From positions 10,387,287-10,451,286 of the forward strand of contig OZ199839.1 in the NCBI GenBank assembly GCA_964304625.1: a stretch of 64,000 bases of DNA. Direction: 5' to 3'. The translations under genes were made by a program, and so were the position numbers. The notes below the pieces were generated by a model. The model saw only the letters and a program-made list of their open reading frames with translations, ran no database searches and was not told the DNA's origin. Origin of the DNA: Kudoa neothunni (taxonomy: Eukaryota; Animalia; Cnidaria). Within the stretch, counting starts at the first letter, position 1. Each line of letters opens with the position of its first letter. Positions 1 through 40,105 of the stretch are shown here, piece after piece.

Positions 1-3000
1 ATTAAATTCTAGAAAAAGAAATTATTTTACTGTCGCAAATATACTGATTATTCAGTCCATTTTGACTGCTGACAATAAAGTTGGTAGGAGTTAGTATTTG
101 AGAGACACTCAACCTAGGACATTCGAGGTTGTTTGAGCAAATATAGCCGCCCCCATGGTAACAGTTATTGTTGATTAGATTACTACCAACATCAACATTG
201 TTTCTAGTGGAATAACTGCAATAGAGCTTATTGTGTTGGATAGTGATTGAATAAATCTGGTTGGTTTGTAGAGCAACTAGTTGGACATAAGGAGGGCTAA
301 ATTCGAATCCTTCTAAATATATGTCCAAGTTAGTAAACACATCAACTAGCAATTAATTGAATACTGGAGGGGATAGAGAACAATTTTAAAATTGGTCTGC
401 CGAAATCTCTGCTTTCATTCAGAATGACATAGAAACTGAAGTCATTGTAGTATTTCAGTTGAACTTCCACATTGACGCACAATGGGATACTTTTGAAACT
501 AACATAGCATTCGCAATTTTTATTCGCAAAATTTCTTTCTCCAATCGAATGAAAAATATAGTCACAAAATTTGGAATGATTTTTTGAATAAGGCACTCTG
601 ACTTTATACTTATTAACTCCGATAGTTTCTAAAGTGATATAATCCGTGTTGATTTCTAAAATTAAAATATGTTATTTAACACAATAACTTCTACTATGCC
701 AACATCAATAAGTAATACCATCTGAGTAAAATTCGCAATGCCAATGTTGGAAATTTTTTCGACCACAAACAAGAAAAGTTTCAAGCGTTTCACTTACCCA
801 AGTAAGCGAGCCTATAGGTGCACTTGGATTCGACTTTAAAATACCATTGAATACAGGAGTTATTATATGAGATGTTATATTGTTGGTACTGATTCCCTTA
901 AGTATGACTATTCTGTCCAATGATCGACCATTCTTAAAAAATATATCTATCTTTTTATCTCTTATTGTCTTTTTCATTTCAACTCGATAAAATATCTTTA
1001 ATTAGAATATAACAACAGAAAATTCAGTAATTTTGTTCAAGTTACTTTGGAATCGAGGGTCAGTGGCTTTATCAATCGTATGGTATTGTTATTTGGACAT
1101 TTCAGTACTAATTTAAAAACCAAGTCCCTTAAAACTAAAATTTTTAGACCGGCGTCTTTATCAATCATAATTCTATTGGTTTGCTGATCTATTTGGATCC
1201 ATTGAGAGCTTTTTTTATCCAAGTAAGTATTTGGTAAGGCGTAGACCATCTTATTACAATATGTGAATATACGATTGTTGACTTTGTGTTTAAAAGTAAT
1301 AGTATCGTCGGCCAGTGAGATTTCAAAGTCGTTTTTATTGTAGCCTAGGTGTAGAAATTAATGAGACCAATTTATTTATCACTCTATTCTTACCAATAAC
1401 TTGCTTATAAATATAATCGTATCCAACCAGTTGTACTGACAAAACAAGATGGCGGTAATTCGCAAATTTAGCAGCAAACGATAAGGTTCTTATATAGAAA
1501 TTTAGACAGGATACAATTGGTGGGCATTCACCAAAATTCCTGCACCCATATAAAAATTCTGAGCGGCTGCCCATCGTAAAACCTTCAAGTTTGAAGTAAC
1601 ATCTGAATCTTGATAAATGATTGAACGTGGTTGCAGTGATAACTATATCATTCCCTTGCCATGAGTGATTCCAATACACTGGCTCATTAGCTAGTCAATT
1701 TATTAAATAACGCCATATATCAATAATAACCAAAATCACCTCTTATTAATCTCACATTTTCCATTATATTATTGTATTTGACAGTGATATTGTATTTGTT
1801 TTTTGCGGCAATCTTGAAAATGGATCTATTGCAACTCGTGTTTTCTTCGCACAATCCCCCACTTGAGGTAGTGCACTGTGAAGTCCGTGTCGTTTGGGGA
1901 TTATTTATTTCATCGTGATCAAGAGATTGTATGTAATAGGAACAAGAAGCCTCAGTCAGATGTGAAAATCGATGTTTGATCTCAATTTCTTCATTATTTG
2001 AGCGTATTGTTACAATTAATTTTCTTTCTAAATTGAACATCAAACACAACTCACACATTATCATAATTTGACCTTTTTTAAAGTTTAGTCTGCGATCGAA
2101 TACGCTGTGATATGCAATTGAAAGATAGTTGTAACGAGAGAGATCCGTAAGAATAACATTTGTCGAGCAATCGTGCAAAAAGGATACCTTGTTCAAGTCG
2201 CTTCGCTCTTCTACACTCTCATACGAATCCAACTCTAACCAACAACTATAACCAGCTAATACAGCTAGATTTGAAACAATTTCAACTCTATCATTGTAGA
2301 AAGTAGGAGAATATTCTAGTTGGTCTAACTCTAAGAAAATTCTGTAATCCACTTCACATGATAGTTAATGTTACTTAGATGAATTAACTTTGCTGCCAAA
2401 ACCTCCAATTTATTAATATAGAAAATAGTTTGGATGGTTTTTTCCAATGGCACCTTCATATTGATACGCCCAAAGCTTAAACTGGTAAATGAGTTGTACT
2501 CGTGGCACTGTTTTATTAGTGTTTCAGTACAGAACAAACGCTCTTCTGACCTGCCGTTTCTCACTGCTCTCACCAAAACATGCACAGCGTTGTTGCTAAC
2601 CTCCTTCGTATCATCAACAAATAATTCCAAATATTTTCCATTTATTTTGTGAGATATGCGCTCTGGAAACTTCTCTACACTCTCAATTAAAAACTATAAC
2701 AATGAAATATTTGGATACCAAATATAAAGTATTTCTCCAGATTTAGTTTTGTTTTTTCAACAATATTGAATGTTAGTTTGTAGTTGGAGCTGAAAGATGA
2801 AAACTCCCACTGATACTCACCACAACTGTTTATTGATGTTTGAGAAGAAGAAGATTTGTCCAGTCGATACTCGATAATCGTAAATTCACACATTTCGTTT
2901 TTAAGGTATGGATTGTTGGAAGAGAGACGAATGTGACGATCATAAGCTACTATTTTCACGTGCTTTTCAACATAAACTAAAAAAGAATTTGTCAGCGTTT

Positions 3001-4910
3001 ATTAATCAAACAAAGTATTTCCAGCCCGACCGCCAAAAAAATATACTGTTGTCGATTTTTGTCCAGTAATTCAACTGACTGATCCATATATAGACTTTGT
3101 AAAGATTTTCGGTGGATAATTTCATAAAATGATCGGAGCATGACTTATAATTTGAAGGAAATGACCCCTCTGTTTGAGCTTCTTCCATATCTCCAATGCT
3201 ATCGTCGTAGGAAGCTGCCGTCAAATACGACGTCTCATTCATATTATGAGTTATAGCGTAATAGACGCATTTCCAGCCCAATTTTGGAGGTATATTTGAC
3301 CATATATTTATTTGTTGATCCTGAAGCTGATAGTTGAAATAGATTTCGCTCCCCGTATCTACAAGTTATTAGTGATGAGGTCATTGTAAGATCAAGATTA
3401 TATTTTTTAATAATGTTACCCCATAATATATTTTTTGTATACATCAAGTTGGAAGCTCGTTTCACATATATCCTATATGATTTTCCAATTTCTCGCTTAA
3501 AATTAAGTTCGCCGCATGTTTTTCTGATCGGTTGTTTACACTCTAGATCATTAATCGTCGAACATGATATCAATTTAATGATTTGGTTGTTTTCGATCTC
3601 TTCCCATCTATATTGTACAACTTCTTCCGCTGAGCACCCGTCAGGTTTCAGACTCACAAAAAATAAACTTTTCTCTACACCAATACTTTCACTGTTTATT
3701 TCTATAATTTTTATTATGTATTACATGATAAAAAAATATTATTTTAATTTTACCTGAGAAAACAAATCTAGAGAAAATCGCCAAATCTTGTTTCACACAC
3801 TTTATCACATATCCATACATGGGATCGTACGAAAATGTTAAACTGTTTGGGGCTGATATCGTAGAATCAATCATTTTAGTATTGAGATCCGGAGAATCCC
3901 CTACTTGTAGTTTTTCCATGTAGCAGTATAAATCAACTCCAAAAGAATAGATAGAATTTATCTGAAGCATCAAAGAATTCATCGACAAATTTATCGGCCA
4001 GGTAGCGACATCGTTTCCTATTCGCAAATAAATGATTAATCAAAGAACTGTTTGAAGGTGGTTTTCATTTAATGGCGAGCAGGTCGGTTAACCCATCTAA
4101 ATAGTTTAGCTATATATCATTACCTAATGGAATATCTATTTCGGCCGACAGATTTATCACTCTAACCGTCATTGTTGTTTGAAGATATTTGGTTGAACTG
4201 ATAAAAAAATCCTTGCATCTCTCAATAAACTCACATCTTTCTGCGGGCTGATCGCATTTGATAGTCTCCTTGTAAGATGAAAATAATTCATTTTTATAGG
4301 GGAATTTTATTTGACACTCTGCGTTAATATTTTTAAACAGCGGCGATGAAAGACGTATGTTATTGTTTTGATCCAATTTCACATCAATTTTCGCTTTCAG
4401 TGGATCTATTTATTAGTTTCAGTTATAATACAATATACTAGTTTGTGCAGATATATATATAGAATATATAAACAAACTACCGCTTTCGACAATAGACGTT
4501 AATGTCTGCTCACAATTGTCCGACCACAACTTCAATTCATACTTTTCCATTCTATCCACCTCATGAACCAAAATTTTACACACGTTGTCGTAACATTTCA
4601 CTCGATTATTTTTTGCATATTTGATTAGACTGTGCAGTTTGTGATTGGTTAGCGTCCACGATGCATTTAAATACGGATAGATGCTTTGATCTGTAGAAAG
4701 GATTGCAACGGACACCTCCAACACATCTGTGTTAAAAATATAACCGTTGGATAGTGTGCAGTGGTTTTGATGTTGGCCTAATGTTAAAGCATTATCTTAT
4801 CTATTTACTATAGGCTGTGTGGAAAAATATCAAATACCTTTTGCTGAATTTGTTAATAACAATAAAACGATAATTTGAAAAATATTAATTCCATATTTGA
4901 CTGATTTCAT
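1..4910 (-). CDS. Large secreted/cell-surface protein made of 14 tandem ~86-105 aa Cys-containing beta-rich modules (Ig/FN3-like architecture suspected); 3' end lies outside the window
   Basis: ATG at 4910 gives MKSVKYGINIFQIIVLLLLTNSAKG, a signal-peptide pattern. Thirteen minus-strand track ORFs join into one open frame via introns 4778-4837, 4406-4480, 4018-4123, 3702-3753, 3359-3419, 2977-3046, 2675-2718, 2331-2374, 2028-2072, 1691-1739, 1345-1393, 996-1045, 656-718 and 346-364 (or GC-AG 346-400). About 1,360 aa lie in the window. The family is not recognised. Confidence 0.8.
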
Positions 4911-38440: not shown

Positions 38441-39035
38441 TTGATTTTGTTGTTTTTTATGAATTCATAATGATTATTTTGCATAATGCGCAACAACGTA
38501 TTTATTCTATCTCGTTGATAGAGTTTAATGATTAAATCATTTTTGTTACCCATCTGCATTTTAAGATAGCAATACATATATGTGCTTTGATCCTTCTCAT
38601 ATTCAATTATTATTTTAAACATTAATGATATGGTGTATATTTCAAACAATCAACCATTGCATCTAAAAATAAGAGGAGTTTCCTATTCACTTAAAAAGGT
38701 AAAAAGTGGTTAAATAGGACCTTAAACGTTATGTTAACGGATTCGAGCTGAGAATGGTAAACAATTTGAATTTTTAGATGAAGCTGCTACCTCAATACAT
38801 TGATTTTACTATCGGTATTTAATTTGATCAATAGCCATCCTGTAGATGAATGTTAAAAAGAAAGACAGTGCTAACAAAATTTGATAGTATAAATGGAAAA
38901 TTGATTCATGAAGAAAAATTATTTAACTTTTCAAGTTTATAGTGTACTAGTGATGTATTGTTATTTCGTAAAATAATAAAAATTATGAATTACAATTTGA
39001 ACTTGGTACAATTATCCAAATTACTATGCTATACT

Positions 39036-40105
39036 TAAACTAACTATAACTAACTATAACTATAACTAACTAACTAACTAATTAACTAACTATAACTATA
39101 ACTAACTATAACTATAACTAACTAACTAACTAACTATAACTATAACTAACTATAACTATAACTAACTATAACTATAACTAACTATAACTATAACTAACTA
39201 TAAACTATAACTAACTATAACTATAACTAACTAACTATAACTAACTAACTATAACTATAACTATAACTAACTAACTAACTATACCTATAACTAACTAACT
39301 AACTATAACTATAACTAATTATAACTAACTATAACTATAACTAACTAACTATAACTAACTAACTAATTATAACTAACTAACTATAACTATAACTAACTAA
39401 CTATAACTAACTAACTATAACTAACTAACTATAACTAACTAACTATAACTAACTAACTATAACTAACTATAACTATAACTAACTAACTAACTATAACTAT
39501 AACTAACTATAACTATAACTAACTAACTATAACTAACTATAACTAACTAACTATAACTAACTATAACTATAACTAACTAACTATAACTATAACTAACTAA
39601 CTATAACTATAACTAACTAACTATAACTATAACTAACTAACTATAACTAACTAACTAACTATAACTAACTAACTATAACTAACTAACTATAACTAACTAT
39701 AACTATAACTAACTAACTATAACTATAACTAACTAACTATAACTATAACTAACTATAACTATAACTAACTAACTATAACTAACTAACTATAACTAACTAA
39801 CTATAACTAACTAACTATAACTATAACTAACTAACTATAACTATAACTAACTAACTATAACTATAACTAACTAACTATAACTATAACTAACTATAACTAT
39901 AACTAACTAACTATAACTAACTAACTATAACTAACTAACTATAACTATAACTAACTAACTATAACTATAACTAACTAACTATAACTATAACTAACTAACT
40001 ATAACTATAACTAACTAACTATAACTATAACTATAACTAACTATAACTATAACTAACTATAACTAACTATAACTATAACTAACTAACTAACTAACTATAC
40101 CTATA
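39036..40105. repeat. 1.07-kb simple satellite built from two words, CTAA and CTATAA
   Basis: Irregular mosaic of aact and aactat units with virtually no G on the + strand. It ends in the palindromic aactatacctatagtt. Confidence 0.98.

Follow-up and report, generated by a model that had tools for sequence, protein, structure and literature searches.

Adhesion G-protein-coupled receptors (adhesion GPCRs, class B2) form expanded families. Giant, repeat-rich ones (e.g., ADGRV1/VLGR1) have a signal peptide and a very long ectodomain built of small beta-sandwich repeats in tandem, and a GPS motif (C-x-C-x-H-x-T...F/Y-A-x-L) close to the membrane leads over to the 7tm_2 core; members bearing fn3 and Ig domains are reported from sponges and other animals (PMC4302439, Fig. 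4). The FN3/Ig-like domains (E-set, TIG/IPT) of receptors such as fibronectin, gp130, Tie2, LAR, Sevenless/ROS1, and sDscam are sandwiches of 85-100 residues, with one module per exon flanked by phase-1 introns in the classic exon-shuffled cases. Here we describe a locus of Kudoa neothunni. The window, which is the whole analyzed stretch of 64,000 nucleotides (contig OZ199839.1 of assembly GCA_964304625.1, positions 10,387,287 to 10,451,286), carries at positions 1-4910 a chain of minus-strand exons that probably represents the 5' third of a ~22.4-kb gene (G000:C2 ~10,369,750-10,392,196) for a giant adhesion GPCR, the predicted receptor having roughly 3,600-3,800 residues. Myxozoans are extremely reduced cnidarian fish parasites, some of which cause food poisoning or spoilage of fish flesh, and to our knowledge little is known about how they sense host tissue and attach to it. 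In the proposed architecture, the window would encode the signal peptide, one CxxxxC module, and 13 orphan sandwich modules (these 13 being termed the head), and beyond the window would follow ~17-19 CxxxxC modules, a GAIN-like region with GPS and a tethered-agonist-like segment, and 7tm_2.

Exon chain at positions 1-4910

The exon model consists of 15 exons and 14 introns on the minus strand, namely a signal-peptide exon beginning with the ATG at 4910 and 14 module exons. Downstream of the first exon (73 nt) lie 13 long minus-strand open reading frames (ORFs). Introns were obtained by listing all frame-compatible GT..AG pairs between adjacent ORFs, and in-frame introns were sought inside one ORF of 642 nt. 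The resulting spliced frame has 1,353 codons and 0 stops, whereas the two alternative frames contain 103 and 105, and the chance of such an open frame, as estimated from the local stop density, corresponds to log10 P ~ -41. The stretch is genuine coding sequence, since its open frame is far beyond chance.

Module exons measure 258-312 nt and introns 44-106 nt (median ~51), with GT..AG ends in 14/14 introns and phase 1 in 13/14, the sole phase-0 intron being 1045-996. Five junctions (4480/4406, 3046/2977, 2718/2675, 2374/2331, and 1739/1691) have an alternative GT or AG close by, and phase 1 is kept in all of them. The published intron length of K. neothunni is 49 bp (PMC12239612); the observed intron sizes fit this value. 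As for composition, the window is AT-rich (GC ~30%) and eukaryotic, and the published assembly has a GC content of 30.4%, a size of 40.2 Mb, a scaffold N50 of 12.0 Mb, and three chromosomes plus the mitochondrial genome (PMC12239612). A first-pass annotation of this DNA, made from the letters alone, had read the region as one frame of about 1,360 codons with a signal peptide and nearly all introns in phase 1, and the figures given above uphold this view. The features of the region are listed below in the order of transcription.

4838..4910, minus strand: exon 1, start codon and signal peptide (Met, basic N-terminus, 10-residue hydrophobic core, 'NSA' small-residue c-region), 24 codons + 1 base, with a phase-1 donor at its end
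4481..4777, minus strand: exon 2, module W02 of the CxxxxC type, Cys 61 and 66; CxxxxC hidden Markov model (HMM) E 6e-11; at least 14 paralogous copies
4124..4405, minus strand: exon 3, orphan head module W03, Cys 30, 50, 57, and 63; no Pfam match; counterpart in contig L041 (28% identity over 93 aa, E 1.5e-6)
3754..4017, minus strand: exon 4, orphan head module W04; no Pfam match
3420..3701, minus strand: exon 5, orphan head module W05; no Pfam match; collinear matches in paralogues P1, P2, P3, P4, and P11
3047..3358, minus strand: exon 6, head module W06 (IWSNIP...C...KSC...IWI.QLNY), the best-conserved module of the head; at least 14 paralogues with 30-36% identity
2719..2976, minus strand: exon 7, orphan head module W07; Pfam TIG_2 E 0.017, under the cut-off
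2375..2674, minus strand: exon 8, orphan head module W08; no Pfam match
2073..2330, minus strand: exon 9, orphan head module W09; 7 strands in the AlphaFold2 (AF2) model; counterparts in paralogues
2028..2072, minus strand: candidate 45-nt in-frame phase-1 intron between W09 and W10, alternatively a coding linker; GT..AG ends
1740..2027, minus strand: exon 10, orphan head module W10, Cys 28, 51, 59, and 65; 6 strands and a low-confidence Cys-rich loop in the AF2 model
1394..1690, minus strand: exon 11, orphan head module W11, Cys 30, 49, 55, and 61; from the spliced model
1046..1344, minus strand: exon 12, orphan head module W12, followed by the sole phase-0 intron; from the spliced model
719..995, minus strand: exon 13, orphan head module W13; from the spliced model
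365..655, minus strand: exon 14, orphan head module W14; from the spliced model
31..312, minus strand: exon 15, orphan head module W15, the last exon within the window; match in paralogue P11
1..30, minus strand: first 30 nt of a 50-nt phase-1 intron (30..-19) leading from W15 to a CxxxxC module at window -20..-322; from the junction listing

The start of the chain recurs in the family: a mini-exon of 57-73 nt with Met, a hydrophobic stretch, and a phase-1 GT is found 40-90 nt upstream of the first module in 7/8 members. As for the putative intron 2072-2028, which may instead be a coding linker, the residues encoded by it correspond to a 15-residue gap in paralogues P2, P3, and P11 and have a predicted local distance difference test score (pLDDT) of ~36 in the AF2 model. 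It was read as an intron because these 15 residues are absent from the paralogues and modelled as disordered.

Probable continuation to a GPS and 7TM end

The first-pass annotation had taken positions 1-4910 for a hidden giant surface protein and a candidate for an undescribed system. Neither a stand-alone surface protein nor a new system is supported. The gene runs off the left edge of the window through the intron 30..-19, and the chain probably forms the N-terminal part of an adhesion GPCR: GPS and 7tm_2 lie downstream, and head and seven-transmembrane (7TM) exons are paired at 15 loci. The annotation had also pointed to the adjacent DNA as the place to look for a C-terminal end, and this was fruitful: the 28 kb left of the window were examined (negative positions below), and both GPS and 7tm_2 were found there.

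According to Pfam, 7tm_2 (PF00002) is present in two exon ORFs at window -16714..-17040 and -17168..-17536 (24.9 and 28.6 bits, respectively, with a cut-off of 20.6), which span profile positions 22-125 and 147-250. The GPS motif C-S-C-N-H-T-T-S-Y-A-M-L-F lies on the minus strand at window ~-16,520..-16,580; its H-T-T triad also occurs in the closest paralogue. The whole GPS and 7tm_2 region occupies window -16462..-17536 (G000:C2 10,369,750-10,370,824), ~22 kb from the ATG, and is preceded by a 196-aa region that is kept among paralogues, has no Pfam match, and may be GAIN-like. A six-frame Pfam 7tm_2 search of this genome gave no match because the domain is split over exons, and exon-protein queries were used instead.

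Between the window and this region the chain of module ORFs goes on. Many of these modules carry a C-x4-C motif, the downstream modules match the CxxxxC profile at E 1e-3 to 3e-13, and several are found as halves only. The exon model is made of curated junctions and covers the parts of the chain on either side of window -1000 to -15000. The largest gap in the chain, of 3.8 kb (window -3466..-7311; G000:C2 10,379,986-10,383,816), is an interspersed repeat; the repeat is ~2.4 kb long and has at least 60 genome copies with 67-82% identity, another copy being located inside paralogue P4. It reads as an intronic insertion.

According to genome searches by exon, the last 7TM exon, W02, and W06 have at least 14 paralogues each, and these family counts are lower bounds (at least 15 loci). 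At 15/15 loci listed, the 7TM, W02-type, and W06-type exons correspond one to one: they share strand and order, and the head lies upstream of the 7TM at a distance of 11-40 kb. The closest paralogue (C2 ~9,588,600-9,601,200, 12.6 kb) is collinear from the first module through the 7TM, and six further members have collinear matches at head and tail. All of the 8/8 members examined share one layout, namely 1 CxxxxC module, 10-14 modules that do not match the CxxxxC profile, 8-12 CxxxxC modules, and GAIN/GPS/7TM, and across the transitions between head and CxxxxC modules the ORFs tile at ~350-nt spacing (8 members, local CxxxxC profile). Module types follow the same order in another organism: contig L041 (Logan SRR31175926, 6,904 nt, GC 17.5%) contains a continuous row of ORFs with a CxxxxC module (the W02 counterpart), counterparts of W03, W05, and W06, fused modules, and CxxxxC modules.

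At ~9 paralogous loci (C1 and C2), 3-5 head modules are contained in one uninterrupted ORF of 279-504 aa, and over its full length the W06 exon aligns to an internal stretch of such fused ORFs. The modules thus belong to a single polypeptide, and the borders of exons coincide with those of modules. Every head module has a separate exon in this gene and its nearer relatives; the fused ORFs therefore also indicate that phase-1 border introns were lost or gained within the family and are dispensable for function. Before the later modules no in-phase start exon with Met and a hydrophobic stretch was found, the only candidates inside the gene being out of phase and attributable to chance. A single gene extending from the ATG at 4910 through the 7TM is thus quite likely. 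While the signal peptide and the repeats are found directly, their place in the same polypeptide as the 7TM is supported by comparison (15/15 pairings listed, collinearity, and L041), and it is on this comparison that the single-gene case rests.

Several points weigh against this reading. The GPS match (E 2.6e-4, 21.9 bits) is just below the Pfam cut-off of 22.5, and its presumed cleavage site is H-T|T, the usual one being H-L|T/S, which makes autoproteolysis uncertain; as far as the motif indicates, it may be lacking or modified. Head and 7TM are separated by four gaps in the exon model (1.1-3.8 kb each). Any chain of symmetric phase 1-1 exons stays in frame, so that an uninterrupted frame is no proof of a single transcript. 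Three RNA runs labelled as the same species gave 0 reads and are thus no test, and very few parasite RNA reads are present in the published K. neothunni transcriptome data (PMC12239612). Finally, the ligand, the G-protein coupling, and the life-cycle stage of the receptor are all inferred.

Two other explanations of the locus were considered. The gaps of 1.1-3.8 kb could separate two genes, a secreted multi-module protein that ends at ~window -3466 and an adhesion GPCR further downstream; in line with this, without use of the donor at -3420 a stop follows 15 codons on in the ORF of the last module preceding the gap. Such an arrangement is unlikely, however, since head and 7TM are paired one to one at all 15 loci listed, the gap is a dispersed repeat rather than a gene end, no phase-compatible start exon with Met and a hydrophobic stretch precedes the later modules, and head and CxxxxC modules tile without gaps both in compact members and in the foreign contig. 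The secreted product would, moreover, have no membrane anchor. The locus could also be a decaying or untranscribed copy, i.e., a receptor-family pseudogene young enough for its 5' exons to be still open by chance. Indeed, it is the most gap-ridden and repeat-invaded of the members examined (22 kb versus 12.6 kb for the closest paralogue), and several of its downstream modules are seen as halves only. Nevertheless, all 15 window exons as well as the GAIN, GPS, and 7TM exons are open and have usable splice sites, half-modules occur in other members too, as intron-split modules, and the copy is old, its identity to other members being 35-45% for the 7TM and 26-37% for the head. An old copy that is still open points to selection, since its frames would not otherwise persist, and a pseudogene appears highly improbable.

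A third explanation concerns the use of the exons rather than the extent of the gene; the evolution of the family is described first. To the right of the window, 14-83 kb from its end, lie three tandem paralogues (G000:C2 ~10,465,800-10,534,700). They have the same DNA sequence throughout the exons for the last module, GAIN, GPS, and 7TM (synonymous divergence, dS, of 0), whereas their ectodomain exons have dS values of 0.03-0.8 and a nonsynonymous-to-synonymous ratio (omega) of 0.1-1.2, typically ~0.5. In comparison with a copy on another chromosome, omega is 0.10-0.27 for the 7TM exons and 0.3-0.67 for the modules; all these values come from paralogues and exclude the gene described here. 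The mosaic of the tandem copies fits gene conversion of the signalling end combined with a faster, weakly constrained change of the ectodomain. Following the first-pass annotation, one might suppose combinatorial skipping of symmetric 1-1 exons, giving many isoforms of a variable host-interface protein: 11/14 module exons have phase-1 introns on both sides and can be skipped in frame, and omega of paralogue ectodomains is ~0.3-0.8 versus 0.1-0.3 for the signalling end. We regard this as decidedly unlikely. W12 and W13 share the phase-0 intron and neither is skippable singly, the fusion of 3-5 head modules in one paralogue exon implies that skipping is not general to the family, and the positional types are kept in order across the paralogues and in another organism, as in a fixed architecture.

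Sequences, folds, and relatives of the modules

All searches and folds were run on single exons or uninterrupted ORFs. According to Pfam, 0/14 window modules are recognized; the only matches are below the cut-off (TIG_2 with E 0.017 for W07 and LIFR_D4 with E 0.07 for W10), and among the 14 modules fn3 (PF00041) and Ig models give no match at E <=1. The CxxxxC HMM, built without this gene, matches W02 only (E 6e-11), leaving W03-W15 unmatched, the best of them being W10 with E 0.006 (23-sequence set). Among the modules themselves blastp reports weak links only (W06-W07, W10-U09, and W05-W10 with 3e-4, 6e-4, and 5e-3, respectively, U09 being a CxxxxC module), and the iterated W06-type HMM finds exactly one module per gene with no spread to other head modules. 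In hhalign comparisons of the positional families, the profiles of which are shallow, head modules all remain below 12% probability, whereas CxxxxC modules are linked to one another at 50-99%.

The first-pass annotation had noticed a faint signature common to several modules, in which a short strand is followed by a Cys in a hydrophobic context. Part of it stands: Cys is present at residue 28-31 in 10/13 non-CxxxxC modules (P 1.5e-7, and 1e-5 when corrected for the choice of residue window), where it sits in a C-x-aromatic/aliphatic context. In profile-profile comparison, however, the head-module families of the paralogues show no homology to one another, the profiles being shallow. A four-Cys pattern at ~30, 50, 57, and 63 is common to five or six head modules, and its last pair, C-x5-7-C, is at the same place as the W02 pair (residues 61 and 66); this correspondence of Cys pairs in head and CxxxxC modules may reflect common descent. 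The annotation had also proposed a rapidly diverging repeat family. The divergence is partly borne out by family ectodomains changing faster than the signalling end, but the family is not one homogeneous repeat, as W02 is of the CxxxxC type and the other 13 modules are positional types. Several head modules have counterparts at matching positions in the paralogues and in another organism, and, as judged from sequence, the head is a fixed series of distinct positional types rather than a young homogeneous repeat. No TM-like segment is found in any of the modules, in agreement with the extracellular character ascribed to them earlier.

As for the fold, three of the 14 window modules were modelled (W06, W09, and W10). 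The AF2 model of W06, with 12 paralogous sequences aligned, has 7 strands and a mean pLDDT of 72.8, its gene-specific loop 48-67 being unstructured. Foldseek against PDB gave no match at E <=1e-3 for a head-module model, and exhaustive structural alignment of W06 gave Z 6-7.6 to Ig-like sandwiches, a range in which (Z <8) similarity can reflect merely a common sandwich arrangement and which thus counts against a closer assignment. The matches include the GH2 sandwich domain, C-terminal domains of the type IX secretion system (T9SS), the MG domain of TEP/alpha-2-macroglobulin, and FN3 domains of fibronectin, gp130, Tie2, Sevenless, ROS1, and sDscam. The ORF with W09 and W10 was modelled from an alignment of 8 with a mean pLDDT of 65.1 (7 strands with pLDDT 71-85 in W09, 6 strands in W10), and it is matched best by FN3 and DUF3244 Ig-like domains (Z 6.2-7.4). 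With moderate confidence, the folded head modules are predicted to be FN3/Ig-like sandwiches, family membership not being claimed. The beta-sandwich modules expected by the first-pass annotation thus agree with all three models, which have 6-7 strands. A feature search in the atlas places W11 nearest to TIG/IPT clusters at 0.83, which is a sub-threshold lead only.

Relatives outside this genome are few. The W06-type profile has 4 matches among 1.84 billion proteins, 3 of which are ORF fragments of Kudoa-like relatives. The remaining one, P0003 (2,911 aa, JGI, E 6e-5), is repetitive and was judged spurious. For a double-module ORF of 213 aa, a protein homology search gave no match, in a collection that seemingly does not include the ORFs of this genome. 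Apart from L041, a scaffold of 2,121 nt (L042, ENA ERZ28624939) is 51-63% identical to other paralogues. These results support the earlier view that the module sequences are lineage-specific.

Proposed role and comparison with known systems

Based on established adhesion GPCR biology, the gene would work as follows. A long rod of sandwich modules would project from the surface of the parasite cell, and its distal head would bind a partner, which could be the matrix or a cell surface of the host or else another cell of the parasite. This binding, or a mechanical pull, would then be relayed to the GAIN/GPS and 7TM core and on to G-protein signalling. The phase-1 introns at the module borders probably reflect how the gene grew, namely by duplication of exons or modules. 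In a wider and rather doubtful version of this proposal, the 13-module head would be the ligand-recognition end of an expanded parasite-specific repertoire of at least 15 receptors, whose core is kept uniform by gene conversion and whose ectodomains diversify (omega ~0.5, up to ~1.2 per exon). The repertoire would then serve as a host- or tissue-sensing system of myxozoans, with phase-1 module exons as the unit of diversification, possibly including in-frame skipping.

At least 15 receptor genes of 12-40 kb represent a large investment for a genome of ~5,300 genes, and in all 8 members examined the distal end of the receptor, the usual place of ligand binding, is an orphan FN3-like block. The literature searched does not mention this family, the K. 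neothunni genome paper contains neither 'GPCR' nor 'receptor' (PMC12239612), and a literature search for myxozoan or Kudoa adhesion GPCRs returned nothing relevant. New here are the anatomy of the head with its positional counterparts, the variable introns, the homologue in another organism, and the mosaic identity of the tandem copies. The exon coordinates can be used for cloning or antibody work, and gene callers based on short ORFs would miss or fragment such genes.

Two further observations concern the surroundings of these genes. About 7 kb upstream of the closest paralogue, on the plus strand (G000:C2 ~9,578,800-9,581,800), there is an intron-free ORF of 3,006 nt for a P-type (Na/K-type) ATPase, in contrast to the many-exon receptor genes. 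Within the window, a microsatellite of >1 kb with CTAA/CTATAA units occupies positions 39,030-40,100 and beyond, which explains a strong dip of GC- and AT-skew in the composition profile.

In comparison with known systems, the architecture is familiar, while the module sequences are orphan and the family is expanded. The locus differs from described adhesion GPCRs in that its repeats are unmatched by Pfam fn3, Ig, Calx-beta, cadherin, or other models and fall into two sequence classes (CxxxxC modules and 13 orphan positional types), in its H-T-T cleavage triad, and in the presence of at least 15 copies in a parasite genome of ~5,300 predicted genes (PMC12239612). Vice versa, the signal peptide, the 7tm_2 core, and the expansion of the family are shared with them, as would be the predicted very long ectodomain with its tandem array of small beta-sandwich repeats and the putative GPS next to the membrane. 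As for FN3/Ig-like receptor domains, the Kudoa modules show no membership by sequence (Pfam E >0.01 throughout), and their Cys residues (at ~30 and 50/57/63, or C-x4-C) have no equivalent in FN3, which has none, and are not clearly the B-F pair of Ig. They do resemble these domains in the predicted 7-strand sandwich of 85-100 residues, in structural similarity (Z 6-7.6, root-mean-square deviation 2.2-3.3 Å over 70-86 residues), and in having one module per phase-1-flanked exon.

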